In this document: positions 1 through 40,620 of the stretch, piece after piece
Layout: each line of letters opens with the position of its first letter
Numbering within the stretch: the first letter of the stretch is position 1
Origin: Paraphysomonas bandaiensis
Taxonomy: Eukaryota; Protista; Chrysophyceae
Reading direction: 5' to 3'
Assembly (NCBI GenBank): GCA_965644295.1
Contig: CBFFRP010000116.1
Coordinates: forward strand, 1 to 52,574
Length of the DNA stretch: 52,574 nt
Translations under genes and position numbers: made by a program
Notes under the pieces: model-generated
Told to the model about the DNA's origin: nothing
Seen by the model: the letters and a program-made list of their open reading frames with translations, nothing else
Database searches by the model: none

Positions 1-497
1 CATTTATATATATCACTATATATTGCAACATATTTAATAATTGCATTTGGTCTTGCAAATATTGTTATTATTATTTTTCTTTTTGCTATCCGTAAATACG
101 AATGCTTATTTTAACCCGTAAAGTATTATGATAGGAGTGTATGTAGGTACTCTGCAGTACGTTATGGTGTAGGACATTAAGGGATTTCTATATGACTAAA
201 TCATACACTGGACTACACACTGGGAATGTCTGAGTGACGACATTCATGGCGGCAAATATCAAGAAAGCTCATTGTCCAACAAGAAATAAACCTAAACCAA
301 TCAATTAGCTTCATATATGTCATGCATAATATGTTCAGCTTTAAATAATATAGCCCAGCTAAACATAGACGGTGGTCTTGGGATAGCAAAAAATAGCAAC
401 GCACACAATACCCTTCGGTGTTATCTCTCAGAAGTCGATAAATATATATATAGCTACAGGAATTCTTACTGTATGACAGATGGAAACCAAACAGTCC

Positions 498-3400
498 TCA
501 AGACGCCAGCGCATCCACCTTGTCAGATTCAGTCGATGAAGAGTCATACAACGACAGGCGACTAACTGAGCTATCATGTGAGCTCTGGTATAGAGCGTTG
601 CTAATCGACGAGCTGGAAATCGAGTATTCATCACGTGATCGAACGCTTTTACTACAGGAGCTGTCATGTTGACTATCCGAAAACTCAGAAGATGAAGGGG
701 TGGAGTAAATTTCGCCACGGGATGACTCACCACTAGTAGAGGAAGGAGAATCCTCGCGATGTTCACTAATATTTCCCGAGTCCAACACATCGCCCCTTGT
801 TTTCGCCTCATACTCACTATCTGAGACTGCGTAATACAGCTCATCGAGATCAGAGATGCCGGTCAGCTTTATTCGCATTGCTTCATTTTCAACAGGGGCT
901 CTTTCAGTGGCATTGTCATACTCATCCCCATTTGAGGAATTAAAACTACTTGACCTAATCCTCACCGAGAGCTCTTCGCAAGCTGTTGATATACCAGTTC
1001 GGCGTGTAATATTGTATTCCTCATCACTCACACTGCCAACACTTCTATCCGATTCGTAGCCCAGGACACTGTTTCTCGATACCTCTGCACTGTCTAATCC
1101 GAATGAGCAACTGTGTTGTCTCACAATGTTGGCTGGAGAGACAGTAGGCACCCACTTCGACCTTTGTTGAGACAAATTTCCGTTATCACTGCAATTCGAT
1201 GCAAGTCTCCATGTGACCTGGCCAATTTCAGATGATTCAGCTTCTGATGATATATCAACTATTGGTGACATACTATCAGGTATTGGCTTGGTAACTGTAC
1301 GCTTTGTTACCACGCTCCTTACACACTCGATCAAAATGACACCTAGCAACATGTAGCCGTACAATGGGTTGGACTGAAGGTTGGAAAACAGTACAAACAC
1401 AAATGCGACTATAATTGGCTGTGCGGTATGAAGTATAACTTGCTGAACGCGGATATTTACGGTTCCAATATATTTGAGTAGAGTCATTAATATTGCAACA
1501 ACACTTACACGCCCCAATAATCCCATAACACCCCCTCGTGTGTGACTCCTACAGCGCTTCAACCCCAGCATATTACTACTGCCATTTTCTCGCCAATCGC
1601 TGCTCATACGTGACGGTGGATAGTAGGAGTGAAACGCCAGCACAATTGAACTCTCAAATAAATCACTGAAGTTTTCAGCGACTCGAGTGCTCACAAAGAA
1701 ATATGAAGGTGTATCTAGCGGGGGGCGCTTTCTCTTCACTGTTGAAAAAGCGTAATCAATGGTGTCCGTAAGGGCCGTAATTGTGCGCTCTACATCAGAG
1801 CTAACAAGCTAGGAGTGGTATTAACACGTGACAGATATTAAGCAATCACTTACTTGCGGGATATTATAATTGATCCATACACATTCAGAGGTCTCGTAAA
1901 ACACAACTTCAATGATGAGTTGAATAGCGCATGCTACGCAGTACCCTTTTTGCCAGCCATAGGACCTGGTCATACCACGAAGGATGGAAAAATAGGCAAA
2001 AAATAAGTTCAAAAAGACAACACAAATCCATGCCAGGATCTTTGCTGTCTTGGTGACTACAAATGAGTGCTTGAAACTGCAAGTAACGAATCTTACATAA
2101 CAAAATTATGGAATTTTAAATCTACGTACTCCTCCTCAGTCTTCGTCTGAAATATTTTTCCAGCCGGACTATTTCGCCCAAGGAGATCAATAACAAACAG
2201 GTGAAGCAACTCCAATCCTAAACACGTACAACATAACAGCATATTCGCTACATGGATAACTGCACTGACGCACCTATATGTACATCTGTCGCGATCCGTA
2301 GTTTATTGATTTTTTCGTTGCATATAGAAGACACATTCTTCATTTCCATGTCAATCAAATTTTCAATCGATGGTGTACACGGAAATGTCGAAACCCTATC
2401 AGTCTTAAAACGACCGATTCTGGCGTCCCAACTTCAAGCAACAGTTACTTATACACAGATATAAATACGATTCGTCTTACCCCCATCGTTCATCAAAATC
2501 TCGAAGACTTTCTCCAGTTAAAATGGCACGTTGATCATTGAAATCTTCTAAAAATTGGTCATATGTGACTGAAACCATCATCTCGTTGGTAATTTCTTCT
2601 GGTCTCACTGATGATGTCGATCGAATCTCATGGGATGGTATCTTGCCGCAGCGTCTCGCCAGTTGGGGTCCTCTTCTATGCGCCTTACTGTTGCACACAA
2701 TTGCATCAAGACTAATTGTGCTGGACTGACTCAGCACATTAGAATCCCCCCTTTCAGTATCTTCAATGATATCTTCACTCGAAAGTCGCCTGAAGGAGTT
2801 TCCCAGTGCACCCCTGGCTAAGGCGTGGCTCTGTATTACTGCTGGGGGCAGTGTGCGAGTAGTTTCACTAAATGGCCGATTTCCCACTTTCGCTTTATTT
2901 ATACTATTAACAGCTGCATCCAAGGAAGACCTAACTACACTGGATGGTCTTCGTGCCACCTGCTTCATTCGGCGTCCCATATTCTGTACCAAAGAATCTA
3001 CTTTATTTTCATCCGCTGTTGGGGCGCTCAATATGTCCTGCCGCATTGCACACATTATACAAAAACCAATGGTGCATTAATTCAAACCTCGAAGAGAAAA
3101 TCAACAACCAGATTTATGGGCGCGGTGAGAACAGCTATCAGCACAGATATAATGACAATAACCTAGCAAGTCTGTCAACAGGAAACATATCATGTGTACA
3201 TCGTCACTGCACCTTATACGATATCGTCGGCTCCACCCATACACATGAGCCACCGCCATCGTCGCTAAGATTCCACTCACACGTGGTCGTACTCGTATCG
3301 AACATCGACCGTTCTGACAGACATGATTTCTCGTCGACATATGTACCACACGTGCCATCATCAGTGGGGTACTCAACATCATAGAAAATTGCAAGCAAAA

Positions 3401-6400
3401 ACATCAGCATCGTCTGCACAGTTAACATATGCAGCCCAGCTTGTAGCCGTATTTCTTCAGCACCTGGTCCACTGGCTGAAAACATAACAACATATCTGTC
3501 CAGTTGGCTTTTATGACAAAAAAAGTGTGAGGCGAACATCTCACCTGTGGTGCTTTGCTACCTCGGAAAGTAGGCACTGCCATGAAGAGCCATCAGACCG
3601 AAACACAGACGGCACAAGTTCCCTACGTTGTATAAATGAAGTTCAAGTACGTGTACAAACTTAAACACAATACCTGATATAATTAAGCAAATACTTTTTC
3701 TGCACGCTCGTGTCACTCTCCTCTAAGCCACATTTAGTATTTCGATTCCTAACTACTGATTTGTGTTGAATCTTGTTTCGTTTATGCGTGAACGATACAC
3801 GAGTTAGTTCTAGCATGGAAACCAAACCTACCGCCCACATAGAAAAAAACATGATGATCACTAGTAAAACATCCCTACGAAAATCGTATTACACAACGAG
3901 TGTATTTGCATACATATGTACAATACCTAACGCCACCAACTGTAATATTATCTGACTCCAAAATAGTTTCAACAAAATCAGTATACGAGTTTTCCATTAT
4001 AGCAGCTACTTCCAGTGAACCAGAAGAGCGTACTGTGCTGTCGCCAGTTGACGACAACAATCTTTTCGATTGCGCGTAGTTGATCATGCACCAACATGTT
4101 GTATCGGTCACAGTGAAATCAACCACTTCGCATGCGTTGCTTCCAGAATCCAGAACTCCACCAACGAGGACACGACACACTGGCATTGTCTGGGAGATTG
4201 GGCAAGTGGTTTTCAGTATTCTTGGAGTTCCGGCGCACTCGTGGGAGACTATCGAATTTGATCCTGGACAAGTATAGTTGTGTGTGCTGTGCTCGTTATC
4301 TGAGCACCTTGTCGTGAAAGACGTGTTTGTGGTGTTAAATAAGCTGTCGTGTAATGTATAGTGATTTCGAAGCACCACTGTAATTTCTTCAAATGCTTTC
4401 CCGCTAGTAGCGGTCGAAACTCGAACATTTATCGGGTTACAGGTAAAATTAGAGTTGTTTCGATACAACTTAGCTGCGGTTTCAACAACACTTACAGCGA
4501 CGGAGGACACGCCTTGTGTTTCACTTCCATTGATTATAACCATGGACTTCTGAATATCAAGAGCCTCCTCCTCACTCGTTCGTGGTAATGTAACCGCTAA
4601 CCCATTCCCATCCAATGTTCGCACAGCAGACACAACCCGTGACAAGGACTGTACATAGGTCACATCTTTTTGACCCTCCACTATCTGTGAAGAAATTAGG
4701 TCAGAGTACTTGTCGACCAGTTCGGCGGATGATGTCCAGTTGCTGAAGGTAGTTAACCGTCGTCGAGATGACAGAGTTGTAACAATTGAGGAGCACGTAT
4801 CAATCGCTCCATATACGTTAACCACATCATATGCCAATTCGAGTTCACCAGCACTATCGAGCAAGAAGTCTACAAGATCATACAATATAACACACGCATC
4901 GGGAGTCAGCTCAACAGGATTCGCAGACAATTGTGACACCGTAGCAACAGTACTTCCGATGTTATCCGGGGTAGGTTCATTGTACATAACAGTTGTTGAC
5001 ACAGAGTCAATTAAGTGCCACCTCGACTGCTGCTTAATTTCAAGCACCTCAGTTGATATATCACAAGCGTCACCAGAAAAGCCGTTGTCACAAATACAGA
5101 CAGCTCGACAAGAAACATCATCAGCTCGACAACTATCTGTGACCTTTCCCGTCGAAATTTCTTCCATTTGACATGTCCCTCTTCTCGTACAGTTGCGAGG
5201 ACATTGTTTCAACATGTACTCGCAAACTTGATCCGTACAGCTCTGATATATTCCACAGTCATTATTCGTACTGCAGAACAAACCCAGTGTATCCATATTC
5301 GAAGAGCCCGAGTAGCACATAGAATTCGCATCTCCTTCTGCTCCAAAGTATCCAGTCCAGCATTTACCACAAGAGTGCGATGTAGAGGCACAACCATTCC
5401 GATGGAGTGAAACGCAATCAGGGGCTAGAGAACAATTTACTGCATTGATAACGCCAGTGAGTATGGCAATTGCCTGCGTAGTCGAATCTATACTGCTTTC
5501 ACCTTCCTTTAAAAGGTTAATAACAAGAGTTGACAAGTCTTCTGAGGTCGAGGTTACTGGCTCAACAGTTACAGTGTAAAACTCCATAGCATTGGCATCC
5601 ATCAAATTGTACACGGTAACTTGACAAGTCACACTATGATTCGCACTGGGAGAGCCCGCGGGAAGAGTGCTGCCGATGTATGTCAACTCCGACCTCGCGT
5701 GCAGCGTCAACAGATCACCACTGGCAGAAATATAGCCAAACGAATACGTCAGTGGTAGCTCCGAATCTGTCCACCGTGATGCCACCATCATAAATTTGTC
5801 TTGTAGTTCATAACCACTTGTGGGGTCAACCACAAATCTGCCAGGTAAAGGGGGGGCTATCACATCCACCGTAACAGATGATGAAGTTGTTCCCACTGAG
5901 CAGGTAAACGTAAAAGAGGCTCCCATATGGAGTGTACTACCGCCCAATACAAGGTTGAATGCAGTTACTCCACCTGGTGTAACTACTCTTCTAACTTGTG
6001 TCAATGCAGATGACACCAAATCGATGCTGCCATCATTGACGAGCCACTCAGCTGTAGCAGAGGAAAATACTTCAACAAAAGCACGAACTACAACCTTTTC
6101 AGCGTAATTCACTTTTCTCGACAACAATGACAAGGAAACCTTGGGAGACAGTGGTGGAGTGATTCTGACTCTCACTATGGCGACATCAGAGCGGTTATAG
6201 GAACCAGACACTGTCAGGGTCACGAAGGTTTCTGTATTCACCAGTGACTCTGAATCAGCGGTAATGGTCACAGTTTCGAGACTTGCACTGGGAGTCAAAG
6301 TTAAACCACACCCATTGCCACTGCTATCGACAGAGTTCACACAACTCCACATCAACGAAAGGCCAGCTGCCACACCGCCGACATCATACAGATCACTGTC

Positions 6401-7870
6401 ATAACTTCCAGACCCATCCAACACAAGGGATTCCCCATATCGCATAGTCTGAACCGAACCCCCTTCAATAACAGCGACTACAGGTGACGGTAGAACGCTT
6501 ACTTCAATAGATGAAGAAGTGCTAACCTTCGATCCATCATGCGTGACAGCGAGGACTATGACATAAACTTCTCCCACATCAAGAGAATACGGCAATAATT
6601 TGAATTTGGACGAATCGGGGTTGGTGTTAATAAGATTGTCCTGTTTAGTCCCATTCTTTACAACTAACCAATCAAATGATAGTCCCCTTTGGGTTTCATC
6701 AGCCCCGCAGCTCGCCGTATATGCATGCGATGATAACACAAGCGGATAGTGTCGATACGCATTTCGTTGAGCCTGACCGACTATAGTCGCAACAGGAACG
6801 CTTGTGGCCTTAACAACAACATTGTGGGTAGCGGAACTGCATTTCTGAAGGAAGTTGCAAAGCCTAATCTCGAAAGTGTATACCTCATCGGCTTTGAGGT
6901 ACGAACCAGGAAGGGATGTGGGAGGTGTATATTTGTATAAACTACGATAGAAACGTCTGATGTCAGAAGCATTCCGAAGAGAATACGAGGAATTAGAAGC
7001 GCTGAACACATCCACAGAAAAATCGTACCAGTCACGTCCACCCGAACCACTTGACCCCGAAATATCCACAACAAAATCATCACACTGGCCGATAGTAGAT
7101 GGTGCGGATATGGATACAACTGGAGATATGGGGTTTGGAGGAGGCAGCACGATGCATGACTGGGAACTAGCTGTTGTCCATTTGGAGCACTCAACTTTAC
7201 TGGCTCCAGAAGGACACATCGCACGAAGTATGCCCCCTTTCATAGTGACAGAATCACCAACATCTATAATAGATGAAGCTGAATGAAGCCACACTGTCGA
7301 CGCACCTTCCTTCCAGCGACATACGAAACTACCAGATGCACTAAAATTAAAAAGCTGTGAGCATTGAAACTGGCTACCAAGTTCACCCATATCAGAGGCA
7401 GCATCCAGTGCAAGAATCACATAGCTTCCATCGTTAGAAAAAGTACAGGTCTGTAATTTCGGAGGCACCATGGGTACGACAGTGGGACTGAAAGTAGGAG
7501 AAAACGTAGGAAGTTGAGTCGGTGGAATCGTATCGCCGAGAAGAGTAGGTTTATGTGTTGGTCGCAAGGTTGGATGCTCTGATGGAATTGCCGTAGGTAC
7601 ATAGCTTGGAAGTGGCGAAGGAGATGAAGTGGGTACTGGCGATGGAACGGAGGAAGGTTGGGCGGTAGGTTGGTAGCTTGGTAGACCAGTTGGCACCTCT
7701 GAAGGCAGAGAACTGGGCGTAGACGAGGGATGAAATGTCGGGGAGCTAGAAGGATGAGCTAAAGGTGTTCCAGTAGGACTGGGAGATGGCATGCCCGACG
7801 GCTCTTCGGAAGGTTTTCCAGATGGCGCCCCAGTAGGTTGACCTGATGGTGCACCGGTTGGCTGACCAGA
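498..7870. repeat. Left arm of a ~7.4-kb inverted duplication (pairs with 13999-21453)
   Basis: Reverse complement matches the right arm. Paired coordinates sum to 21869 over 3875-7800 (3875/17994; 7800/14069) and to 21885 distally (1739/20146). Introns are included. Similarity ends at the stop codons. Confidence 0.97.
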
Positions 7871-9819
7871 AGGCTGAACAGTAGGCTGTCCGGAAGGCAT
7901 TCTAGTAGGCTGTTCTGATGGTGCACCAGTTGGCTGACCAGACGGTTGAACAGTAGGTTGTCCTGATGGCGCCCCACTAGGGTGGCCTGATGGTGCGCCA
8001 CTTGGCTGACCAGAGGGTTGAACAGTAGGCTGTCCTGATGGCGCCCCACTAGGGTGGCCTGATGGTGCACCAGTTGGCTGACCAGAGGGTTGAACAGTAG
8101 GCTGTCCTGATGGCACCCCAGTAGGTTGTGTAGATGGTGCACCGGTCGGCTGAACAGTAGGCTGTCCAGAAGGTATTCTAGTAGGGTGACCTGATGGCGT
8201 ACCAGTAGGTTGACCAGTCGGTTGAACAGTAGGCTGTCGTGATGGCGCCCCAGTAGGTTGTTCAGATGGTGCACCGGTTGGCTGAACAATAGGCTGTCCA
8301 GAAGGTATTCCAGTAGGGTGTCCTGATGGCGCCCCACTAGGGTGACCTGATGGCGTACCAGTAGGTTGACCAGACGGTTGAACAGTAGGCTGTCCTGATG
8401 GTGCACCACTTGGCTGACCAGACGGTTGAACAGTAGGCTGTCCAGAAGGCTCTGTTGTAGGGTGACCTGATGGCGCACCAGTAGGTTGACCAGACGGCTG
8501 AACAGTAGGCTGTCCAGAAGGCATTCTAGTAGGTTGGCCTGATGGTGCATCAGTTGGTTGACCAGACGGCTGAACTGTAGGCTGTCCAGAAGGAGTTTCC
8601 GTAGGTTGCCCTGATGGTGCCCCAGTAGGTTGACCTGATGGTGAACCAGTTGGCTGACCAGACGGTTGAACAGTAGGCTGTCCTGATGGTGCCCCACTAG
8701 GGTGACCTGATGGTGCACCACTTGGCTGACCAGAGGGTTGAACAGTAGGCTGTCCAGAAGGTGTTATCGTAGGTTGTACTGATGGTTTCCCAGATGGCGC
8801 CCCAGTAGGTTGACCTGATGGCGCGGTTGGCTGACCAGAGGGTTGAACCGTAGGCTGTCCAGAAGGTGTTATCGTAGGTTGTCCTGATGGTGCACCAGTT
8901 GGTTGACCAGAAGGCTGTCCAGAAGGTGTTACTGTAGGTTGTTCAGATGGTTTTCCAGATGGTGCCCCAGTAGGTTGACCTGATGGTGCGGTTGGCTGAC
9001 CAGACGGTTGAACAGTTGGCTGACCAGAAGGAGTTTCCGTAGGTTGTCCTGATGGCGCCCCAGTAGGTTGACCTGATGGTGCGGTTGGCTGCCCAGAAGG
9101 CTGAACAGTAGGCTGTCCAGAAGGAATTTTCGTAGGTTGTCCGGAGGGATAATTCGTCGGCAACGATGTAGGACTATCTAAATTTTAAAGAGTATCTATT
9201 ATTTCAAATATTTCTCATTTCTTATTAGTTGCTTACCAGTTGAGATTGCCTGGGTGTACAGTGAGCGAATTCTCATGGTATTTCTATGCGGCCGATAACC
9301 AATGACAGTAATGTCTTTGTCGTAATTTTCACTAAATATAAGATCACCATCCACCCAGAATTGCATAATATTACTTGTGCGAACAATTTCTACATCGATA
9401 TAGACATTCGCTGGAGGACTCGGTGCACCATACCGAATTGAAAAACTTGCTCCTTCTAAGAAGTATTGCTCGTATCCATTACCTCCATCGAATCCAAAGT
9501 GTTCTAATCCAGAGTTCGTATTTTTAAATATAAACGAAGCGGCTGTAAAATCAATTGTCTCCAAAAGTACTTCAGATTTAATGATAAAATCTCCAGTGAA
9601 TGTTACTGGAAGGCTCCATTCGAGAAACTTACCCACAGTTGATATGGAGTAGTAGCCTCCTGAGGAGTAGAATCCGGATGTTGCCGTACAGCCCGGTTGG
9701 AGCACACCGTCTAATACACCTGCATGCTCATAGGTTGTTTGGGGCTGGAAGGAGACTGTATGTACTCCGCATATGATGGAGAGCAAAAGGAGGGCGAAGT
9801 GTGTGGGGTTGGTCCACAT
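498..9819 (-). CDS. Multi-exon surface receptor A: signal peptide, beta-sandwich (ConA/lectin-like) head, PSGQ/PTxx stalk, REJ/polycystin-1-like ectodomain, EGF-like Cys region, GPS-like motif, multi-TM region, Ser-rich tail
   Basis: ATG 9819 with hydrophobic leader MWTNPTHFALLLLSIICG. A GT-AG intron at 9236-9178 joins the 206-aa ORF in frame to the 1762-aa ORF (..ISTD-SPTSLPTNY..). REJ/PKD-type motifs LVLDGSGSYDSD and SRWTDSELPLTYSFGY. Downstream exon fragments (3861-3661, 3539-3204, 3055-2477, 2012-1821, 1739-498) mirror gene B. Not every 3' splice site was resolved. Confidence 0.8.
7801..9170 (-). repeat. Coding 12-bp tandem repeat (P-[S/T]-x-x: PSGQ, PTVQ, PTGA), mucin-like stalk of receptor A
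   Basis: More than 100 tetrapeptide units visible in the translation. Confidence 0.95.
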
Positions 9820-10243
9820 GGGCTATGTGAGCAAGATACAAGTGACTAGATGAGAGGGAGCGTGCGATATGATAATATATCCATATGTATACAACTGAGC
9901 TTGAAACTATCGATTTTAATTCACCTGACAGCTGGACATACATGCACTGTACACATACAGGGGGAGACGATAGGCTGCACTGACCTGCTGGGATGATAAG
10001 GAGTATTGGTAATTATAATCATCTCATACAGCATACAGTCATATGGGAAACTGTGTCTATCACCCTCATAACAAGTACAGCATCCATACAACTTGGAACT
10101 CCATAAACTAGTAGATATGAAGATATCCATATCGAGCAGTTCTACTCATAAAATCATGTATTATTAGTATCATATTTCTCCAAAATGGGGTATTTTTAGA
10201 TTCTCTTTGCAGTATTTATATATATACTGTATATAGTATACAG

Positions 10244-10413
10244 GGGGTGGTTGTGCATATCGATTTCATCGATTTGTTCATCATTTATTTCATTGAAAAG
10301 TCATCGATTTTTCAGTGAAAAGTGAAAAAAAGTGATTTTAAAAGAAAAAACGATGATTTTTCGATGAAATAAACGATGAACAAATCGATGAAATCGATAT
10401 GCACAACCACCCC
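10244..10413. mobile_element. 170-bp palindromic MITE-like element (PIF/Harbinger/Tourist-like ends)
   Basis: About 70-bp imperfect inverted arms GGGGTGGTTGTGCATATCGATTTCATCGATTTGTTCATC... and ...GATGAACAAATCGATGAAATCGATATGCACAACCACCCC. Flanked by CAG on both sides (10241-10243, 10414-10416), a candidate 3-bp TSD. Confidence 0.75.
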
Positions 10414-10826
10414 CAGTATGGACTGCACAATATATGAGAGGGATTGCGGTTATTTACACAACTCTCGAAAATCCTGCTTTTAGTTTTACATACACAGTAA
10501 ATCGGTGGGTTTTTAATATCTAAAAACACCCGTATTTGGGATTCTTTGTTGGAGGGATGCAGGGATTTAGGGAGAAGAGTTCGATCATCCATCACTTGAT
10601 TGTGTCTGTGCTGTGACAGGCGCATATATCAGAGAAGGTTTAGCTACAGATGCCGAGAAGATGCATGTGACTCCATCACACTCCGAAGTGACTATGCGGA
10701 GATATGTATACATAACAAGAGTGAGTGTGATGGTTAAACACAACTAACAAACACACATATACACACTCTCATCAGATCAGACACTCTTCAGCCTCTTCAG
10801 TCCCAGTGCTCTGCTCATCCACTGAT

Positions 10827-13800
10827 ATGCTGCCTGAGTTGTGTCTGTTCCTCTGCGTGGCTGTTATGGGATATCAACCATCTCAAGGTAATGGTTCGTG
10901 TTATCATACTAACATAATGATCATATGATTGATTAGGCCATAATATATCTGAGTTACATCGTCACTTATCTCATCAACAACAACTCTATTCGCTCACTTT
11001 TATAGCTGGAAACGGTGAAGAGGGACACTATGATGCAATTGGGACAAACTCAAAGTTCACCCGACCCGGAGCCCTGAAGTTATACTCCTCCGATCAATAT
11101 GCATTGATTGGTGATTATACCCGTATACGTAAAATCGATATGGCTACAATGACAGTAACCACTGTGGCTGGAAATGGAAGTATTGGTAACACTGATGGTG
11201 TTGGAACCAATGCACAGTTTGTGGCGCCATATGGATTAGCAATTTCTTCAGACAATGGCTTCGCACTGGTAACGGACTTTGACAGTAATTATATACGACA
11301 ATTGTTTTTATCATCCAGACAAGTCATTACGCTTCATCAACCACTTTCTGGAGGTGGAGCACAGAATAATGCAACAGCCATTAATTTCAATAGTTCACGT
11401 GATATAGTTCTCTCTGGGGATAATACCTATGCTATTATTGTCGACGGAAATAACAATCGAATTCGGAAATTTGTGCTGAGCAACAAGGTGGTTACAACTG
11501 TTGCAGGCGGCACGGTTGGAAATGCCGATGGTATTGGTACTAACGCTCAATTCGAAAATCCCATGGGTATGTGCATGTCCTCTGATGAATCTTTTATATT
11601 GATAACGGAATTTTATGGTAATCGTGTGCGTAAGATGGTATTATCAACATCTATGGTGACTACCATTGCAGGATCTGGGGCTCGGGGTATATTAGATGCA
11701 GTGGGAACTTCAGCTTCCTTCTCTTCTCCATCGTCGGTGACTCTTTCCCAATCGGACAGTGTGGCATATGTGTCTGACCTTAGTGGAAACACCATTCGAC
11801 ACATTGATATGGCTACACTGAATGTGACTAGCGTTGTTGGAACAACAATAGATGATAATGTGAAAGGTGTAGGTACCAATGCTTTATTTAGTTCTTCTTC
11901 ACTTGGTATTTCTGATGAGGAGTCATTCATGTTGGTTTGTAGTATGAAGAGCCATCGTATTTTCAAGGTGAATAATATTCTCTCGCTCAGCACCAGTTTC
12001 CCTACTAGTTCCCCCACTGTTTTGCCGTATAATGCTACCGAGGCGAGTGTTTTATGTCACATGATATCTTCCACGAATATTGAGAGTATATTATCAGAAT
12101 GGGTATGTGGGAATACTGGTTGGTGCACTTGGACGGGAATTACGTGCGAGGAGTCGGCTATAACTCGAATTAATTTGGGGTGGAGTTTAATGACGGGTAC
12201 TATACCGTCATCTATTGGGTGTTTGACAAAGCTTACGAATTTCGATATGTCTTCTAATAGTTTGACCGGATCCTTGCCCAGTTCTTTATCATATTTGTCG
12301 AAGTTAGGAGAACTACGATTACGGAGGAATTTACTTAGTGGTTCCTTGCCATCGAATATTGGTTTGATGACCAGTTTAGGTTTGATTGATTTAAGTAAAA
12401 ATCTGTTTAGTGGCAGTATTCCTAGTTTTAGTGGACAGATGACCAAATTATCGTTGTTGAAGTTGGAAAACAATTTGTTTACTGGAGTAATACCATCAGA
12501 GTTGTCACTTCTCAGCTCTTTGAGTCGTGTGCTATTGTACAGTAATAGCCTTTCAGGAACTATTCCATCCGAACTGGGTGATATGGCGTCGCTTAATAGT
12601 TTCGTTGCCCGGGACAACAGACTGACCGGAACACTTCCCTCCTCACTTGGAAAGCTTTCTGACTTGGAAATATTGATCGTCAAGAACAATTCACTGTCTG
12701 GAACAATTCCAAGCTCATATACCAGTCTGTTTCAATTGAGAAATCTTATCTTGGATGAAAACAACTTTCAATCGACTTTTCCATATGAAATGTGCGCTAT
12801 TGGGAGTTTATCAGCATTTTACATTTCTCAGTCAGCGATTCATGAATGCCTACTTCCAACTGCTACACCCACCCCACAACCAACTTGTATCCCCTCAGGT
12901 GATCCATCAAGCCATCCTACTGGGACACCATCAGCTTACCCCACTGTTATACCTACTAGTACACCCTCAGGCCAGCCTACTGTGACACCTACAGTGCAGC
13001 CAACGGAAACCCCGTCTCAATGTCCCACTGGCGACCCCTCTGTATGTCCAACTGGTGGACCATCAGGGCAACCTACTGGGGTGCCTTCTGGACAACCTAC
13101 TGGGGTGCCTTCTGGACAACCTACTGTTCAACCGTCTGTTCAGCCAACCGGTACACCATCAGGTCAACCTACTGGGGCGCCGTCAGAACAACCCACTAGA
13201 ATGCCTTCTGGACAGCCCACTGTTCAACCCTCTGGTCAGCCAACCGGTGCACCATCAGAACAACCTACTAGAATACCTTCTGGACAGCCTACTACTCAAC
13301 CATCTAGTCAGCCAACCGGTGTACCATCAGGTGAACCTACTGGGGCGCCATCAGGACAGCCAACGGAAACCCCTTCTGGTCAGCCAACCGGTGCACCATC
13401 AGAACAACCTACTGGAATACCTTCTGGACGGCCTACTACTCAACCATCTAGTCAGCCAACCGGTGTACCATCGGGTGAACCTACTGGGGCGCCATCAGGA
13501 CAGCCAACGGAAACCCCTTCTGGTCAGCCAACCGGTGCACCATCAGAACAACCTACTAGAATACCTTCTGGGCAGCCTACTACTCAACCGTCTACTCAGC
13601 CAACCGGTGCACCATCAGTTCAACCTACTGGGGCGCCATCAGGACAACCTACTAGAATGCCTTCTGGAGAGCCTACCGTTCAACCCTCCGGTCAGCCAAC
13701 CGGTGCACCATCAGGTCAACCTACAGGGATGCCATCAGGACAGCCTACTACTCAACCATCTAGTCAGCCAACCGGTGTACCATCAGGTGAACCTACTGGG

Positions 13801-16800
13801 GCGCCATCAGGACAGCCAACGGAAACCCCTTCTGGTCAGCCAACCGGTGCACCATCAGAACAACCTACTAGAATACCTTCTGGACAGCCTACTACTCAAC
13901 CGTCTACTCAGCCAACCGGTGCACCATCAGTTCAACCTACTGGGGCGCCATCAGGACAACCTACTAGAATGCCTTCTGGAGAGCCTACCGTTCAACCCTC
14001 CGGTCAGCCAACCGGTGCACCATCAGGTCAACCTACTGGGGCGCCTTCTAGAAAACCATCCGAAACGCCGTCGGGCATGCCATCTCCCAGTCCTACTGGA
14101 ACACCTTTAGCTCATCCTTCTAGCTCCCCGACATTTCATCCCTCGTCTACGCCCAGTTCTCTGCCTTCAGAGGTGCCAACTGGTCTACCAAGCTACCAAC
14201 CTACCACTCAACCTTCCTCCGTTCCATCGCCAGTACCCACTTCATCTCCTTCGCCACTTCCAAGCTATGTACCTACGGCAATTCCATCAGAGCACCCAAC
14301 CTTGCGACCAACACATAAACCTACTCTTCTCGGCGATACGATTCCACCAACTCAATTTCCTACGTTTTCTCCTACTTTCAGTCCCACTGTCGTACCCATG
14401 GTGCCTCCGAATCTACAGACCTGTACTTTTTCTAACGATGGAAGCTATGTGGTTCTTGCACTGGATGCTGCCTCTGATATGGGTGGACTTGGTAGCCAGT
14501 TTCAATGTTCACAGCTTTTTAATTTTAGTGCATCTGGTAGTTTCGTATGTCGCTGGAAGGAAGGTGCGTCGACAGTGTGGCTTCACTCAGCTTCATCTAT
14601 TATAGATGTTGGTGATTCTGTCACTATGAAAGGGGGTATACTTCGTGCGATGTGTCCTTCTGGAGCCAGTAAAGTTGAGTGCTCCAAATGGACAACAGCT
14701 AGTTCCCAGTCATGCATCGTGCTGCCTCCTCCAAACCCCATATCTCCAGTTGTATCCATATCCGCACCATCTACTATCGGCCAGTGCGATGATTTTGTTG
14801 TGGATATATCGGGGTCAAGTGGTTCGGGTGGACGTGACTGGTACGATTTTTCTGTGGATGTGTTCAGCGCTTCTAATTCCTCGTATTCTCTTCGGAATGC
14901 TTCTGACATCAGACGTTTCTATCGTAGTTTATACAAATATACACCTCCCACACCCCTTCCTGGTTCGTACCTCAAAGCCGTTGAGGTATACACTTTCGAG
15001 ATTAGGCTTTGCAACTTTCTTCAGAAATGCAGTTCCGCTACCCACAATGTTGTCGTTAAGGCCAGAAGCGTTCCTGTAGCGACTATAGTCGGTCAGGCTC
15101 AACGAAATGCGTATCGACACTATCCGCTTGTGTTATCATCGCATGCATATACGGCGAGCTGTGGGGCTGATGAAACCCAAAGGGGACTATCATTTGATTG
15201 GTTAGTTGTAAAGAATGGGACTAAGCAGGACAATCTTATTAACACCAACCCCGATTCGTCCAAATTCAAATTATTGCCGTATTCTCTTGATGTGGGAGAA
15301 GTTTATGTCATAGTCTTCACTGTCACGCATGATGGATTGAAGGTTAGCACTTCGTCATCTATTGAAGTAAGCGTTCTGCCGTCACCTGTAGTCGCTGTTA
15401 TTGAAGGGGGTTCGGTTCAGACTATGCGATATGGGGAATCCCTTGTGTTGGATGGGTCTGGAAGTTATGACAGTGATCTGTATGATGTCGGCGGTGTGGC
15501 AGCTGGCCTTTCGTTGATGTGGAGTTGTGTGAACTCTGTCGATAGCAGTGGCAATGGGTGTGATTTAACTTTGACTCCCAGTGCAAGCCTTGAAACTGTG
15601 ACTGTTACCGCGGATTCAGAGTCACTGGTGAATACAGAAACCTTCGTGACCCTGACAGTGTCTGGTTCCTATAACCGCTCTGATGTCGCCATAGTGAGAG
15701 TCAGAATCACTCCACCACTGTCTCCCAAGGTTTCCTTGTCATTGTTGTCGAGAAAAGTGAATTATGCTGAAAAGGTTGTTGTACGGGCTTTTGTTGAAGT
15801 ATTTTCCTCTGCTACAGCTGAGTGGCTCGTCAATGATGGCAGCATCGATTTGGTGTCATCTGCATTGACACAAGTTAGAAGAGTAGTTACACCAGGTGGA
15901 GTAACTGCATTCAACCTTGTATTGGGCGGTAGTACACTCCATATGGGAGCCTCTTTTACGTTTACCTGCTCAGTGGGAACAACTTCATCATCTGTTACGG
16001 TGGATGTGATAGCCCCCCCTTTACCTGGCAGATTTGTGGTTGACCCCACAAGTGGTTATGAACTACAAGACAAATTTATGATGGTGGCATCACGGTGGAC
16101 AGATTCGGAGCTACCACTGACGTATTCGTTTGGCTATATTTCTGCCAGTGGTGATCTGTTGACGCTGCACGCGAGGTCGGAGTTGACATACATCGGCAGC
16201 ACTCTTCCCGCGGGCTCTCCCAGTGCGAATCATAGTGTAACTTGTCAAGTTACCGTGTACAATTTGTTGGATGCCAATGCTATGGAGTTTTACACTGTAA
16301 CTGTTGAGCCAGTAACTTCGACCTCAGAAGACTTGTCAACTATTGTTATCAACCTTTTAAAGGAAGGTGAAAGCAGTATAGATTCGACTACGCAGGCAAT
16401 TGCCATACTCACTGGCGTTATCAATGCAGTAAATTGTTCTCTAGCCCCTGATTGCGCTTCACTCCATCGGAATGGTTGTGCCTCTACATCGCACTCTTGT
16501 GGTAAATGCTGGACTGGATACTTTGGAGCAGAAGGAGATGCGAATTCTATGTGCTACTCGGGCTCTTCGAATATGGATACACTGGGTTTGTTATGCAGTA
16601 CGAATAATGACTGTGGAATATATCAGAGCTGTACGGATCAAGTTTGCGAGTACATGTTGAAACAATGTCCTCGCAACTGTACGAGAAGAGGGACATGTCA
16701 AATGGAAGAAATTTCGACGGGAAAGGTCACAGATAGTTGTCGAGCTGATGATGTTTCTTGTCGAGCTGTCTGTATTTGTGACAACGGCTTTTCTGGTGAC

Positions 16801-19800
16801 GCTTGTGATATATCAACTGAGGTGCTTGAAATTAAGCAGCAGTCGAGGTGGCACTTAATTGACTCTGTGTCAACAACTGTTATGTACAATGAACCTACCC
16901 CGGATAACATCGGAAGTACTGTTGCTACAGTGTCTCAATTGTCTGCGAATCCTGTTGAGCTGACTCCCGATGCGTGTGTTATATTGTATGATCTTGTAGA
17001 CTTCTTGCTCGATAGTGCTGGTGAACTCGAATTGGCATATGATGTGGTTAACGTATATGGAGCGATTGATACGTGCTCCTCAATTGTTACAACTCTGTCA
17101 TCTCGACGACGGTTAACTACCTTCAGCAACTGGACATCATCCGCCGAACTGGTCGACAAGTACTCTGACCTAATTTCTTCACAGATAGTGGAGGGTCAAA
17201 AAGATGTGACCTATGTACAGTCCTTGTCACGGGTTGTGTCTGCTGTGCGAACATTGGATGGGAATGGGTTAGCGGTTTCATTACCACGAACGGGTGAGGA
17301 GGAGGCTCTCGATATTCAGAAGTCCATGGTTATAATCAATGGAAGTGAAACAGAAGGCGTGTCTTCGGTCGCTGTAAGTGTTGTTGAAACCGCAGCTAAG
17401 TTATATCGAAACAACTCTAATTTTACCTGTAACCCGATAAATGTTCGAGTTTCGACCGCTACTAGCGGGAAAGCATTTGAAGAAGTTACAGTGGTGCTTC
17501 GAAATCACTATATATTACATGACAGCTTATTTAACACCACAAACACGTCTTTCACGACGAGGTGCTCAGATAACGAGCACAGCACACACAACTATACTTG
17601 TCCAGGATCAAATTCGATAGTCTCCCACGAGTGCGACGGAACTCCAAGAATACTGAAAACCACTTGCCCAATCTCCCAGACAATGCCAGTGTGTCGTGTC
17701 CTCGTTGGTGGAGTTCTGGATTCTGGAAGCAACGCCTGCGAAGTGGTTGATTTCACTGTGACCGATACAACATGTTGGTGCATGATCAACTACGCGCAAT
17801 CGAAAAGATTGTTGTCGTCAACTGGCGACAGCACAGTACGCTCATCTGGTTCACTGGAAGTAGCTGCTATAATGGAAAACTCGTATACTGATTTTGTTGA
17901 AACTATTTTGGAGTCAGATAATATTACAGTTGGTGGCGTTAGGTATTGTACATATGTATGCAAATACACTCGTCGTGTAATACGCCGATTGTAGGGATGT
18001 TTTACTAGTGATCATCATGTTTTTTTCTATGTGGGCAGTTGGTTTGGTTTCCATGCTAGAACTAACTCGTGTATCGTTCACGCATAAACGAAACAAGATT
18101 CAGCACAAATCAGTAGTTGGGAATCGAACTGCTAAAAGCGGCTTAGAGGAGAGTGACACGAGCGTACAGAAAAAGTATTTGCTTAATTATATCAGGTATT
18201 GTGTTTAAGTTTGTACACGTACTTGAACTTCATTTATACAACGTAGGGAACTTGTGCCGTCCGTGTTTCGGTCTGATGGCTCTTCATGGCAGTGTCTACT
18301 TTCCGAGGTAGCGAAGCACCACAGGTGAGATGTTCGCCGCACACTTCTTTTTGTCATAAAAGCCAACTGGACAGATATGTTGTTATGTTTTCAGCCAGTG
18401 GACCAGGTGCTGAAGAAATACGGCTACAAGCTGGGCTGCATATGTTAACTGTGCAGACGATGCTGATGTTTTTGATTGCAATTTTCTATGATGTTGAGTA
18501 CCCCACTGATGATGGCACGTGTGGTACATATGTCGACGAGAAATCATGTCTGTCAGAACGGTCCATGTTCGATACAAGTACGACAACTTGTGCGTGGAAT
18601 CTTAATGATGATGGAAGTGGTTCATGTGTATGGGTGGAGCCGACGATATCGTATAAGGTGCAGTGATGATGCACGCATGATATGTTTCCTGCTAACAGAC
18701 TTGCTAGGTTATTGTCATTATATCTGTGTTGATAGCTGTTCTCACCGCGCCCATCAATCTGGTTGTTGATTTTCTCTTCGAGGTTAGAATTAGTGACCCA
18801 TTATTTTTTACATAATGTGTGCGATGCTGCAGGACATATTGAGTGCCCCAACAGCAGATGAGAAAGTAGTTTTAATGACGCAGAGTATGGGACGCCGAAT
18901 GAGCCAGGTGGCACGAAGAACACTACATGGAATATCTTCTTCGGTGTATGCGACTATTAAGAGTATGGCTAAAAATAAAAAAGGATTGAGTCGCCTCACG
19001 GGCTCGCTAGTGTTGAATGAAACTACTCGCGCACTGCCCCCAGCAGTAGTACATAGCCATGCCTTAGCCAGAAGTGCACTGGGATGCTCCTTAAAGCGCC
19101 TCTCGAGTGAGGGTATCGTTGAAGATACAGAACAGGGGGACTCTAATGTGCTGAGTCAGTCCAGCACAGTTAATCTTGATGCCATTGTATGCAGCAGTAA
19201 GGCGCATAGAAGAGGAGCCCAACTGGCGAGACGCTGCGGCAAGACATCATCCCATGATATTCGATCAGCATCATCAGTGGGACCAGAAGAAATTTCCAAC
19301 GAGAAGATGGTTTCAGTCACATATGACCAATTTTTAGAAGATTTCAATGATCAACGTTCCATTTTAACTGGAGAAAGTCTTCGAGATTTCGATGATCGAT
19401 GGGGGTAAGACAAATCATATTTATATCTGTGTATAAGTAACTGTTGCTTGAAGTTGGGACGCCAGAATCGGTCGTTTTATGACTGATAGGGTTTCGACAT
19501 TTCCGTGTACACCATCGATTGAAAATTTGATTGACATGGAAATGAAGAATGTGTCTTCTATATGCAACGAAAAAATCAATAAACTACGGATCGCGACAGA
19601 TGTACATATAGGTGCGTCAGTGCAGTTATCCGTGTAGCGAATATGCTGTTATGTTGTACGTGTTTAGGATTGGAGTTGCTTCACCTGTTTGTTATTGATC
19701 TCCTTGGGCGAAATAGTCCAGCTGGAAAAATATTTCAAACGAAGACTGAGGAGGAGTATGTAGATTTAAAATTCCATAATTTTGTTATGTAAGATTCGTT

Positions 19801-21453
19801 ACTTGCAGTTTCAAGCACTCATTTGTAGTCACCAAGACAGCAAAGATCCTGGCATGGATTTGTGTTGTCTTTTTGAACTTATTTTTTGCCTATTTTTCCA
19901 TCCTTCGTGGTATGACAAGGTCCTATGGCTGGCAAAAAGGGTACTGCGTAGCATGCGCTATTCAACTCATCATTGAAGTTGTGTTTTACGAGACCTCTGA
20001 ATGTGTATGGATCAATTATAATATCCCGCAAGTAAGTGATTGCTTAATATCTGTCACGTGTTAATACCACTCCTAGCTTGTTAGCTCTGATGTAGAGCGC
20101 ACAATTACGGCCCTTACGGACACCATTGATTACGCTTTTTCAACAGTGAAGAGAAAGCGCCCCCCGCTAGATACACCTTCATATTTCTTTGTGAGCACTC
20201 GAGTCGCTGAAAACTTCAGTGATTTATTTGAGAGTTCAATTGTGCTGGCGTTTCACTCCTACTATCCACCGTCACGTATGAGCAGCGATTGGCGAGAAAA
20301 TGGCAGTAGTAATATGTTGGGGTTGAAGCGCTGTAGGAGTCATACACGAGGGGGTGTTATGGGATTATTGGGGCGTGTAAGTGTTGTTGCAATATTAATG
20401 ACTCTACTCAAATATATTGGAACCGTAAATATCCGCCTTCAGCGAGTCATTCTTCATAGCGCACAGCCAATAATAGTCGCATTTGTGTTTGTACTGGTTT
20501 CCAACCTTCAGTCCAACCCATTGTACGGCTACATGTTGCTAGGTGTCATTTTGTTCGAGTGTGTAAGGAGCGTAGTAACAAAGCGTACAGTTACCAAGCC
20601 AATACCTGACAGTATGTCACCGATAGGTGATATATCATCAGAAGTTGAATCGCGTGAAAATGGATCCTGCGTAATGAGCTGCGGTCACGAGGTCACACAG
20701 AAACTTGCATCGAATTCCATCGAAGAAAAGTTGTCTCATCAGAGGTCAAAGTGTATGTCAGCTAACTCTCCAACTGTCATTGTGAGACAACGCAGTTGCT
20801 CATTCAGATTAGACAGTGCAGAGGTATCGAGAAGCAGTGTCGTGAGCTACTTATCGGACAGCAGTGATAATAGTGTGAGCGATAAGGAATACAATATTAA
20901 GCGTCGAACTGGCATATCAACAGCATGCGAAGAGCTGTCAATGAGGGTTAGGTCAAGTAGTTTTACTTCCTCAAATGGGGATGGTTATGATGATGTCAGC
21001 GTAAGATTCCCTGTTGAATATGAGGAAGCGCAAATGAGGTTGACCGGTATCTCTGATCTTGATGAGTTGTATTACCCACTCTCTGACAGTGAGTATGAGG
21101 CGAAAGCCAGGGGCAATGCGATGGACTCAGAAGATATAAGTGAACAACGTGACGAATTTCTGATTGATTCTCCTTCATCGAGTAGTGGTGAGTCATCCCA
21201 TGGCGAAATTTACTCCATTACTTCATCTTCCGAGTCGTCCAAGGAATCTGTTCATGATATGATGCCTCATTTACTAGACTGTGAGGATAGTCAGCACGAG
21301 AGCTCCTGCAGTGGAGGTATTGGATCTCGTGATGAATACTCGATGTCCAGCTCGCCGATAAACAGGGATCGATACATGAGCTCTGATAGCTCAGTTAATT
21401 GTCTGTCGCTGTATGACTGTTCATCGAGTGAAACTGATAATGTGGATGCATAG
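10827..21453 (+). CDS. Multi-exon surface receptor B: signal peptide, NHL beta-propeller repeats, plant-type LRRs, PSGQ/PTxx stalk, then the same REJ/EGF/GPS-like/multi-TM body as receptor A
   Basis: ATG 10827 (MLPELCLFLCVAVMG). Intron 10888-10936 is in frame with the 2296-aa ORF. NHL motifs (TTVAGNGSIGNTDGVGTNAQFVAPYGLAIS) at about 10990-11975. LxxLxLxxNxLSGTIPSELG LRRs at about 12050-12830. Intron 17943-17994 leads into TM exons (DVLLVIIMFFSMWAVGLV; EVAKHHR-Y; LTVQTMLMFLIAIFYD). Stop at 21451-21453. Confidence 0.82.
12860..14070 (+). repeat. Coding 12-bp tandem repeat stalk of receptor B with higher-order 144-bp and 312-bp blocks
   Basis: Marker cagccaacggaaacccct recurs at 13357, 13501 and 13813, with matching flanks. 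Confidence 0.95.
13999..21453. repeat. Right arm of the ~7.4-kb inverted duplication (pairs with 498-7870)
   Basis: Near-identical translation from PSGMPSPSPTGTPLAHPSS onward in both large ORFs, and mirrored small ORFs throughout the ORF track. Confidence 0.97.
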
Positions 21454-37435: not shown

Positions 37436-39970
37436 TCAACCCCGGCCGCCAGTGTTGCGCATTTTCTTCATATACTCCTCGTGATACTTTTGTCCGTCGT
37501 CATCCTTCTTCGCATTAAAGTCCTCCAGCTGCTGGAAGTTCTTGCGCTTCGCAAGTAGCTTGTTTAGTGCTGGGGGATATACTCCCTTGCAGTACCAGCT
37601 ACCGGGGGCATCACAGATACGGTTAGCAGGGTCGGAAGTATAGTTCTTGGAAGCCTGAGACACACCAACTACCTCATATATTCGTACTTTTCCGTACTTG
37701 GATATGAACCTCTCCTTGAAGAGGTTCTGGTTGACGGTCACACCTGGTTTTTCGCGATATCTGTGAAGTTTGTAGAGCAGAGACTCAGCCATCATCGGGG
37801 TTGGGTCCATCTGTCGATTATAGAAGCCGAACTGCTGACAGGTGGGATCACCTGGACATATATCAGGGAAGACAGAATTGCCGATACGAGCCATGTGGGG
37901 GGACTTAGCAAGATCATCTCCTCCCCCTCCTGCCCAAATAAGAACATAGTCAGCGAGGTGCTTGATGATATTGTGGGCACGTTTCTCTGGAGAAGTCAAG
38001 CACCGCCCAAGTAAAGCAATATGCTGCATAAAAACAGTCATACACAACCCCGATAAGATCTATTATCTAACAACTATACACACTACTGTGCATGACAATA
38101 CCTCATGGTTCCAAGTGTTGCCATCTGCAATAGTAGTCCTGTTGCCAATGCCAGTTATTTGGTACCCGTAGTCCCACCAAGCCATGATGCGGGCGTCCTC
38201 AGGAGTCTTGTCTCGTAGCCACCAGTAGGCTTCTCGGTAGTCATCTACCATGATCACAGTACCATCTCCCAAACGTGCCTGGAACATCAGCGAGGGGTTG
38301 GAGAGGTGATGTCCCATCTGATTGGAGTAGGTATAAAATTCGGGAATATCCACAACAGCGAGGTAAACTATGGCCAGTGCGACCAACTTGCGGATGATCT
38401 TGACGACTGTTAGAGAGTTGAACTCAGCCCACTTCGATTCAATCATGTCAGTGATCGTATTAGATCCGGACACAGTACTCTTCGTAGCAGGTGTCGTTTT
38501 CTTACTAGACTTTCCAGAGTCGCTTTTGGCTTTCTTGCCTTTCGGGGTGGCGACAGTGGGTGGATCCTCAACTGAAGCTTCCTTCGAAAATGAAGCTAGA
38601 AGTTCACTCACCTCGCACCACAGAAAGTCGATCATAGCAGCAATTGCTATTCCGCTGAGGGCGGAAGATATTGGGCCCATGAGGAGCATCAGACGATTCA
38701 TCTTGGTAGAGAAATGGTACGCAACGATAGCATATGTGACAATAAAAACCATAGGGTCTGTGCTTGCATCTGTGTCCTTCTTTGGCTTAAAGAAAGGCTT
38801 AATGACCGAAGTATATAAAGCAACCACAAACCCTACGGGGGAGGTATGACACGCATAGTGGAGGAATTGCCAGAATGCCTGGGGACTGGCAGGCTGATGC
38901 TCCGCGACTGAGTCGACAAGGGGGTTGCCAGTTCGCGTGTGGGTCACAAAGAGTCCACGAACACGAGAGGACAGCGGTCCAAAATATCCGGTAGGCCACA
39001 GCATAGCAACCACCACTGAGGCAACAACGGCAGCAGCAGCAAACACCTGAGATCGGACCTTAAACCTCTGTCCTGCGGTCATGGTCTCAGCCTCCAACTT
39101 GTAGAGTTTCAGAAAACGAGGGTTTTCGCAAAGCTGTAAAAGCTGCATTAGGAAAAAGACACCCATAGGGGCAAGTTGCTCAAGGGATCTTAGTGGGGTC
39201 AGACCCACAACAGGTACGCGAGTGGCGCCGAAGGTTCCAACAATGTACCAAAGGGTATATGACCAGTAGAGTTTGTTCGAGAATCTACCAAGGATAACAA
39301 GAAGAAAGGCGTGCAAGCCGATAAGATTAAGGACGAATATATAACCCCCCCACGTAGCAACCATACATGTGTACGCAATGCCAGTTAAGATACCAACGAA
39401 GTTCATCTTGCGATCATCGGTTCCAGACAAAGAGTACATCCACAAGAGAAAAGTCAAGCACAGACACGAAATGGCAACCGATTCGTTATCGTATCCACCC
39501 CCAACAGAACGCATAATGTGAGCTGGAATAATGGACATGACAGCAGCAGCGGCAATCCCAGCTGTCTGTGACCCAGAAGCAACATAGGTACCTAAGCCAA
39601 GTAAATTGGTTGCTAAAACGCCAAACCAGACAGGAACATAACAACAGACGTCATTAAGAGACATTTCAATTCCAATACTGTTAAGAACATTCCAGATAGC
39701 AACAGATGCCATTTGCATGCCCGGATAAATAGTTGTTCCAACAGGTCGTCCAAGTGGGGACCAACTCATGTAATCATACCAATGAAAGAATTTCATAAGG
39801 CCATTATCAGCTAAGTATTGTGTTGCACGAAAATTAAACCATGGATCAAATTCATGAATAACTAAACCATAAATATTAATCGCATGCATACGTACACTGT
39901 ATGCTGAGTATCCGATAAAGATCAAAGCAATGATTTGGAAGATACGTAATGCAATAGATTGTAACGCCAT
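37436..39970 (-). CDS. STT3: Oligosaccharyltransferase catalytic subunit STT3 (2 exons)
   Basis: IHEFDPWFNFRAT, GGYDNES, SVAEHQP, WWDYGYQI, DGNTWNHE|HIALLG and DLAKSPHMARI motifs. Intron 38101-38024. Likely start MALQS at 39970. Confidence 0.97.
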
Positions 39971-40340
39971 ACTTATAATCAAATGACTTAAAATATAATA
40001 AAAATAAGATGAAATGCAATAGTCTTGCAACACCTGAACCGTTGAATCGGTTATATATTGGTGTTATGCAAGAGACACGCCTGTAAAGGGAACTAAATGG
40101 TTAGATGATACAAGCCCTTGCAACACCTCTGTGTATGTATGTATGTATGCATGTATGTATGTATGTATATGCACACATCAACTGACAATATGAGAGGCTC
40201 CACACCACACAAATACACGTACTGGTGTACCACACTATGACCCCCCACTACACTGCTATATACACTGCTGTACACTTGGCATCGTATGAGAGGATGTAGG
40301 TAGGTAGGTACAAGATTATGTTATGCATAGGTACAGTAGA

Positions 40341-40458
40341 TGTGTATATTTAGGTACAGGTGTATATATTTAGGTACAGATGCATATATTTAGGTACATA
40401 TATATTTAGATACAGGGATATATATGTACAGGGGTATACAGATATATATTTAGGTACC
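40341..40458. repeat. Degenerate ~20-bp minisatellite (TATATTTAGGTACAG core), about 5 copies, in the divergent STT3/HMG-like intergenic region
   Basis: tatatttaggtac recurs at about 40345, 40365, 40385, 40403 (variant) and 40445. Confidence 0.75.
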
Positions 40459-40620
40459 AATGTCTATCTATACAACTCTACAAGTACATATCTCCATCAC
40501 CACAATATATACACAGGTACACATGCCCCAATGGTGGAGAAACATCCCATCAAACTCTCATCTATAACTCACTCACTCTATTAACAAACACACTCATCAT
40601 ACATACATACATTCAAAACT

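Follow-up and report, generated by a model that had tools for sequence, protein, structure and literature searches.

A head-to-head pair of REJ receptor genes in Paraphysomonas bandaiensis is probably an old inverted duplicate with one chimeric member

Background

Can a protist re-pair the sensor parts of its surface receptors with other receptor bodies by inverting a piece of its genome? The question is raised by two divergently transcribed genes of the chrysophyte Paraphysomonas bandaiensis, which occupy positions 498 to 21,453 of a stretch of 52,574 nucleotides (CBFFRP010000116.1 in assembly GCA_965644295.1), here called the window (contig C116). Gene A is read from the minus strand and gene B from the plus strand, and their start codons are 1007 nt apart. 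Both encode large putative surface receptors with a Pro/Thr-rich stalk, a REJ-type ectodomain and a multi-pass membrane part. A first-pass annotation of the sequence described near-identical bodies, unrelated heads and a differing loop and tail, and proposed an invertible, shufflon-like cassette. A crossover in the stalks or arms would flip a core that holds both heads, allowing two-by-two combinations of sensor and output, and the stalk could serve as an adaptor for shuffling heads across the family.

Inversion that swaps protein modules is known from bacteria, the R64 shufflon being an example. Chimeric new genes are known as well, such as Drosophila jingwei, which arose by duplication and capture of 5' exons. 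Inverted segmental duplicates that undergo gene conversion are likewise of a known kind, and so is the shuffling of exons within a receptor family. In this study, we report that gene A carries the 5' module of a small secreted-protein gene on a receptor body of the gene B lineage, and that the bodies of both genes are homogenised by gene conversion. We consider it likely that the locus as a whole is an old inverted duplicate pair in concerted evolution, one member of which became chimeric by 5' module capture. As it stands, the locus does not reveal a new mechanism.

Results

Gene A and gene B are inverted duplicates

All genome-wide statements refer to a single assembly of 62.5 Mb in 669 contigs. 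A repeat search of the window placed the two genes in inverted arms, with blocks at 3518-7960/13909-18351 (4443 nt, 98% identity), 1222-2872/19013-20663 (96%), 3006-3522/18348-18864 (94%) and 746-1179/20727-21160 (82%), which are merged in a single blastn alignment of 683-8701 with 21235-13096 (8152 nt, 92.7%). In a profile of 200-nt steps, arm A is 95-100% identical to arm B across 1276-7856, with the exception of an island at 2873-3057 (68%). Identity is 69-84% in the tail region (700-1275) and 58-79% in the stalk repeats, and the drops are abrupt, from 95% to 69% near 1276 and from 96% to 70% near 7857. The bodies are 98% identical in amino acids and the transmembrane cores 97-100% identical, compared with 73% for a loop exon and 68.5% for the tail. 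Together with the Pfam matches given below, arms and profile bear out the first description of the pair. Every coding indel between A and B is a multiple of three. The sole indel that is not (1 nt at 3522/18347) lies 5' of a conserved exon and is presumably intronic. The last exons can be aligned as protein up to both C-termini (73% identity), so that the entire 3' end was duplicated. A truncation of the gene A tail at the duplication breakpoint, suggested by a noisy DNA alignment, is ruled out by this protein alignment.

Gene B begins with a signal peptide exon of 61 nt (10827..10887, plus strand, ATG at 10827, phase 1), read from the sequence and followed by an intron at 10888-11005. Its frame continues into an open frame beginning at about 10933, and homology to paralogs begins at 10672. 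The long open reading frame (ORF) of the gene spans 11104-17994. In the head (11006..12861), NHL-type beta-propeller repeats occupy about 11006-12000 and leucine-rich repeats (LRRs) about 12229-12807. The Pfam matches of the head are NHL (26.5 bits) and Str_synth (27.5 bits), both weak but above threshold, and LRR_14, LRR_1 and LRR_8; paralogs on contigs C79, C516, C247 and C609 share this head. A Pro/Thr-rich stalk of about 383 aa follows (12862..14012; periods of 24/48/72/144 in Tandem Repeats Finder, Pfam PT E 9e-73), and then the ectodomain body (14013..17994) with its REJ domain at about 15223-16362 (E 3e-46). NHL repeats, LRRs, stalk and REJ body all lie in one exon of about 7 kb. The 3' part (17995..21453) was delineated by hydropathy and tblastx conservation with distant paralogs and comprises transmembrane exons, the loop exon (18842-19408) and the last exon (20146-21453), with hydrophobic segments at about 17984, 18430, 18708, 19616-19702, 19819-19914, 20353, 20446 and 20521.

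Gene A (minus strand) starts with an exon (9237..9819, ATG at 9819) that, as read from the sequence, encodes a signal peptide followed by a head of about 170 aa, all-beta by prediction. The exon closes in phase 1, with the GT of the intron at 9236-9235. Intron 1 (9178..9236; 59 nt, GT..AG, phase 1) is followed by a single exon of about 5.3 kb that contains stalk and REJ body. The stalk (7857..9177) has about 440 aa in PSGQPT-type repeats of 12/24 nt (periods 12/24/72/144, Pfam PT E 2e-99). The ectodomain body (3875..7856) is part of an ORF of 1762 aa (3875-9163), with the REJ domain at about 5492-6613 (ORF residues 851-1224, E 1.5e-46). In the 3' part (498..3874), several small exons code for transmembrane segments; the loop exon lies at about 2477-3040, and the last exon, at 498-1739, encodes three hydrophobic segments and a Ser/Asp/Glu-rich tail. 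This 3' part was defined by ORFs, exon limits and in-frame indels, its exons being carried over by homology from those mapped on gene B.

In both genes, the REJ match (PF02010) covers about 400 of the 452 profile positions. Both stalks are built of 12/24-nt repeats that, read in the ORF's own frame, encode PSGQ/PTxx units, so that the in-frame 12-bp repeats of one family seen in the first-pass annotation are confirmed. The small 3' exons were delimited by tblastx against distant paralogs and searched singly by reference. Hydropathy of the open segments gives at least eight hydrophobic segments over these exons, an approximate count since exons were taken one by one. The divergent loop is a genuine coding exon in both genes, all of its indels being multiples of three. 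In polycystin-1-like receptors, a GPS cleavage motif directly precedes the first transmembrane helix, a PLAT domain occupies the first cytoplasmic loop, and there are 11 such helices. These domains were searched for with Pfam. The final 497 aa of the large exon, where a Cys-rich segment is present, gave no GPS match at E values up to 1, and neither PLAT nor PKD_channel was matched in the 188-aa loop exon or the other exons.

Gene A is a chimera with a captured 5' module

A genome-wide search with the body gave at least 36 REJ bodies. The nearest paralogs besides A and B are four copies on contigs C79, C516 and C247 (two), with 77-82% amino acid identity. All four carry an NHL(+LRR) head of the gene B type directly upstream of the body, which identifies head B as ancestral in this six-member subfamily. 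Head A is present elsewhere in the genome in two copies only (C133:107180-107767, 91% aa identity; C182:138539-139120, 78%), and it is joined to a REJ body exactly once, in gene A.

The two other copies belong to small genes (G000:C133:106564-107767, minus strand; G000:C182:138539-139692, plus strand) with the same signal peptide, head and intron as gene A, the intron being conserved in both position and sequence. Their stalk is of the PTSSPT type and about 150 aa long. Neither a large downstream ORF nor a DNA match to the arms was found near them. The module shared with gene A (9167..9943, minus strand, 777 nt) extends from about 125 nt 5' of the ATG through exon 1 and intron 1 into the opening codons of the stalk exon. 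In blastn it is 93.6% identical to C133 (G000:C133:107113-107892, 781 nt) and 80.6% to C182. The match to C133 begins about 125 nt 5' of the ATG and fades 10-25 nt into exon 2, and beyond this junction the stalks of the two genes part into different repeat types. A C133-like 5' module is thus followed, from the start of the stalk, by a body of the gene B lineage, which makes gene A a chimera: a C133-type 5' module placed on an inverted copy from the gene B lineage.

The limits of about 9170 and 12860 that the first-pass annotation had given for the unshared core are borne out: head A is homologous to its donor as far as about 9167, and stalk B begins at about 12862. In evolution, a head was exchanged at the stalk, as the boundary of the captured head A falls within the opening codons of the stalk exon. 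The occurrence of head A on only one REJ body indicates a single historical fusion and not active shuffling.

No relative of head A was found in Pfam at E values up to 10, in a profile search against PDB sequences or in a word-based protein search, and a scan of metagenomes for head A in other strains or orientations found nothing. Where the first-pass annotation saw a putative beta-sandwich in head A, an AlphaFold model is all-beta, with a pLDDT of only 41. Features from a protein language model give a lead only, towards the concanavalin-like families PF06439 and PelX_N (0.95). Between gene A and C133, the head has a synonymous divergence (dS) of 0.14, from few sites, and a ratio of nonsynonymous to synonymous divergence (dN/dS) of 0.35.

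Gene conversion between the arms

Substitution rates were determined by the method of Nei and Gojobori, with the C79 paralog as outgroup. In the body (1306 codons), dS is 0.041 between A and B and 0.42 to C79. The corresponding values are 0.075 and 0.37-0.41 for the last transmembrane part, 0.20 and 0.40-0.50 for the loop exon, and 0.33 and 0.40-0.45 for the tail. Divergence from the outgroup is therefore even along the gene and that between A and B low only in the body, which shows that the arms recombine and that the body is homogenised. The homogenised domain, as delimited by the identity profile and the contrast in dS, is 1276..7856 in arm A and 14013-20609 in its partner. Differences between A and B are overdispersed, with identical runs of up to 453 nt. 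Taken together, the even outgroup dS, the sharp transitions and the clustering of differences indicate an old duplication, close to the age of the subfamily, whose central 6.6 kb were converted later. The larger dS of the A and B tails (0.33) as compared with that of head A and C133 (0.14) suggests that head A was captured after the duplication.

Within the homogenised domain, the loop exon contains an unconverted island (about 2760-3045, partner 18830-19125), where A and B share about 74% identity with each other and 75-76% with each of the four outgroup copies. Ectopic conversion by a third paralog was considered as its source and ruled out, because only six copies exist in the genome and the island of each is about 75% identical to the others. 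On the evidence of these alignments, the island escaped conversion. The body has a dN/dS of 0.22. This purifying selection on both genes suggests that both are probably working receptors, which would bind different ligands.

A second head-to-head inverted pair of REJ receptors is present at G000:C380:255708-278554, in blocks of 96-98% identity with less similar stretches between them. Here, homologous NHL heads are found on both sides, about 1.5 kb apart. The C380 pair indicates that inverted duplication with conversion is a general route by which the family grows, not a head-swapping device.

The intergenic region and the integrity of the assembly

The divergent intergenic region, which presumably contains the promoters, spans 1 kb between the start codons (9820..10826). 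At its middle lies a near-perfect hairpin of about 180 nt that resembles a miniature inverted-repeat transposable element (10238-10419; DNA folding energy -76.7 kcal/mol, z -19), with at least 40 copies genome-wide. The two heads and this repeat are the only contents of the core. The contig starts only about 500 nt beyond the gene A stop (window 1-500), and an assembly break thus adjoins the repeat arm.

A dispersed repeat within the core, a contig start next to the arm and the position of related copies at contig ends could point to an artefact, with A and B either misjoined from different loci, for example at the hairpin, or produced by a collapsed or chimeric duplication. That the duplication might be a misassembly had been named at the outset as a way in which the cassette could fail. 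Across 1290-7850, the alignment of the arms shows differences at 237 columns, and the frames of both are intact and under purifying selection, by which a fold-back or collapse is excluded. A misjoin at the hairpin is unlikely: a repeat of 180 nt is a weak cause of misjoining where contigs average about 90 kb, the strong conversion between A and B fits close linkage, and the C380 pair shows the same arrangement independently. Altogether, we regard an assembly artefact as highly improbable.

Inversion of the core

The geometry required for head exchange is present, as the first-pass annotation had recognised: homologous crossover in the arms would flip the core, so that the two heads exchange the distal parts of their genes and are fused to them in frame. 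Recombination between the 6.6-kb arms of 98% identity could recurrently invert the core of about 5-6 kb without any programme, re-pairing the heads with the other loop and tail, and both orientations would then exist in populations or clones. Such events are compatible with an old duplicate pair in concerted evolution and add one claim to it. Gene conversion between the arms is evident from dS and the clustering of differences, and crossovers arise from the same intermediates as gene conversion. Since the arms recombine, the core may reasonably be expected to invert from time to time, and homologous recombination is a plausible cause of such incidental events. Long inverted repeats of 95-100% identity surround the segment, and any crossover within them preserves the frame by homology, all coding indels being multiples of three. 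In Saccharomyces, homogenised inverted paralogs of 4 kb cause recurrent re-inversion (PMC9731477). Against this stand the single orientation in the assembly, in which no second copy, opposite orientation or haplotig of the locus was found, and, according to one study, the usual preference for noncrossover repair between intrachromosomal repeats (PMC5159554). The present pairing of the ancestral head with one of the tails is uninformative either way. We regard recurrent unprogrammed flipping as possible, if somewhat doubtful.

Much less can be said for programmed, shufflon-like swapping, in which a dedicated or regulated recombination would invert the cassette for receptor diversity and the stalk would act as a family-wide adaptor. 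The geometry would fit, many head types occur on stalks across the family, and the persistence of a divergent loop island within a homogenised region could mean that both variants are selectively maintained. No recombinase or transposase domain was detected by Pfam in the ten ORFs of at least 150 aa at 21.5-52.5 kb of the window, a scan that did not include an open frame at 46-52.6 kb running off the window. Short specific crossover sites are lacking as well, the 12-nt repeats being ordinary Pro/Thr-coding repeats found family-wide. Head A is borne by one REJ body in the whole genome, and in the C380 pair, with the same head type on both sides, an inversion would swap nothing. A two-by-two choice of sensor and output would be thin: the transmembrane core is nearly the same in both genes, and the alternatives are paralogous versions, 68-73% identical, of one disordered-looking loop and one Ser/Asp/Glu-rich tail. 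With neither recombinase domain, discrete crossover sites nor a second orientation found, the shufflon-like part of the first-pass annotation is not upheld, and we judge programmed swapping to be extremely improbable.

Neighbouring genes and further family members

In the ten ORFs at 21.5-52.5 kb, the only Pfam matches were STT3, DUF7788/DUF2828 and PLAC8. On the minus strand, they correspond to an STT3 oligosaccharyltransferase (38066-40033) and a PLAC8-like ORF (41942-42622), and on the plus strand to a DUF2828/DUF7788 protein (43543-45667); the neighbours across 37439-45667 look ordinary.

Three paralogs, at C79:180-188 kb, C516:15-31 kb and C247:145-162 kb, are 94-100% identical in DNA and lie at or near contig ends. 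They probably represent an unresolved tandem array or haplotigs. On C516, the NHL head of another gene lies directly downstream. A single open frame of 6091 aa with two REJ-body matches (45% and 44% identity to the query) was observed at G000:C506:7719-25640. It may encode a giant receptor with two bodies, or else two genes may be read through as one.

Discussion

The history that we propose for the locus begins with an ancestral gene for a giant multi-pass REJ surface receptor, which would have been duplicated in inverted tandem so that the copies diverge from a shared intergenic region of 1 kb. Gene B would retain the ancestral order of signal peptide, NHL propeller, LRRs, Pro/Thr stalk, REJ ectodomain, multi-pass membrane part and acidic Ser-rich tail. 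Gene A would keep stalk, body and tail of the duplicate, its promoter-proximal DNA, exon 1 and intron 1 having been copied from a secreted-protein gene of the C133/C182 type, with a junction at the very first codons of the exon for the Pro/Thr stalk. Conversion between the arms, occurring repeatedly, would hold the 6.6 kb of body and membrane exons near-identical, and would leave out the stalk repeats, the tails and the loop island, which looks cytoplasmic. Sometimes conversions may be accompanied by crossovers, that is, inversions, as an unprogrammed by-product.

Several points weigh against this reading. The gene models rest on exon-by-exon reference searches, and the splice sites and expression of gene A are predicted from the DNA. 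Part of the high dS of tail and loop could come from alignment of low-complexity sequence, though the outgroup control argues otherwise. The order of duplication and capture depends on a dS of 0.33 as opposed to 0.14 at few sites, and would be obscured if head A and C133 had since undergone conversion. Finally, the proximity of the contig start to gene A shows that the assembly is strained here.

Among known systems, the closest in layout is a 24-kb flip/flop region on Saccharomyces chromosome XIV, whose 4-kb inverted paralogs are continually homogenised and which re-inverts recurrently in evolution, yet is stable on laboratory timescales (Salzberg et al. 2022, PMC9731477). In both cases, inverted, near-identical and homogenised paralogs flank a short unique segment, and inversion is expected from recombination without a dedicated recombinase. 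In yeast, both orientations are found in many strains, whereas one is seen here. Moreover, the yeast repeats are whole genes, while in P. bandaiensis they are the 3' nine tenths and the heads lie inside the core, so that an inversion re-pairs parts of proteins.

Bacterial shufflons and the epigenetic invertons of hsdS (PMC7672463, PMC7394358) resemble the locus in that inverted repeats within coding sequence permit in-frame exchange of modules between two genes. They differ in having short, defined repeats and usually an invertase next to them, a silent copy beside an expressed one, and demonstrably mixed orientations in a clone. None of these features was found here; both genes of our pair have a start codon and a signal peptide of their own. 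A eukaryotic inversion at inverted repeats with a functional outcome is the mating-type flip/flop of Ogataea polymorpha (PMC5720833). That system is regulated by starvation and acts through position-dependent silencing, not by re-pairing of domains, and no regulation is evident here.

In their architecture, the receptors are similar to polycystin-1, PKDREJ, the REJ receptors of sea urchin and the REJ-GPS protein Esi0130_0068 of Ectocarpus (PMC4700764). They share a large REJ ectodomain above a multi-pass membrane region and variable, lectin- or LRR-like N-terminal modules, in a family that is present in stramenopiles. In the receptors studied here, Pfam matched no GPS, PLAT or PKD-channel domain; they differ in their long Pro/Thr stalks, and with at least 36 bodies the family is hugely expanded in this genome. 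In its origin, gene A is comparable to chimeras of the jingwei type: both parents are identifiable, the junction lies at or near an intron/exon boundary, and the open frame is under purifying selection. It is set apart by a junction within a low-complexity Pro/Thr stalk that is common in kind to both parents, albeit with different repeat types, and by a recipient that is an inverted duplicate still homogenised with its parent.

Conclusions

A stronger form of flipping would be a natural flip/flop in which selection keeps the loop islands and tails distinct and up to four receptor combinations occur in a population or clone. We think this unlikely. If it were true, the locus would be a recombinase-free eukaryotic counterpart of the module-swapping invertons of bacteria, and a flip would alter not only gene order but the composition of the proteins. 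Apart from this, the pair shows that inverted copies of a gene evolve in concert in a stramenopile. Above all, it provides a clean and datable case of an expanded protist receptor family gaining a new sensor head: at the Pro/Thr stalk, a 0.78-kb promoter-plus-exon module was grafted to the body of a duplicated receptor.

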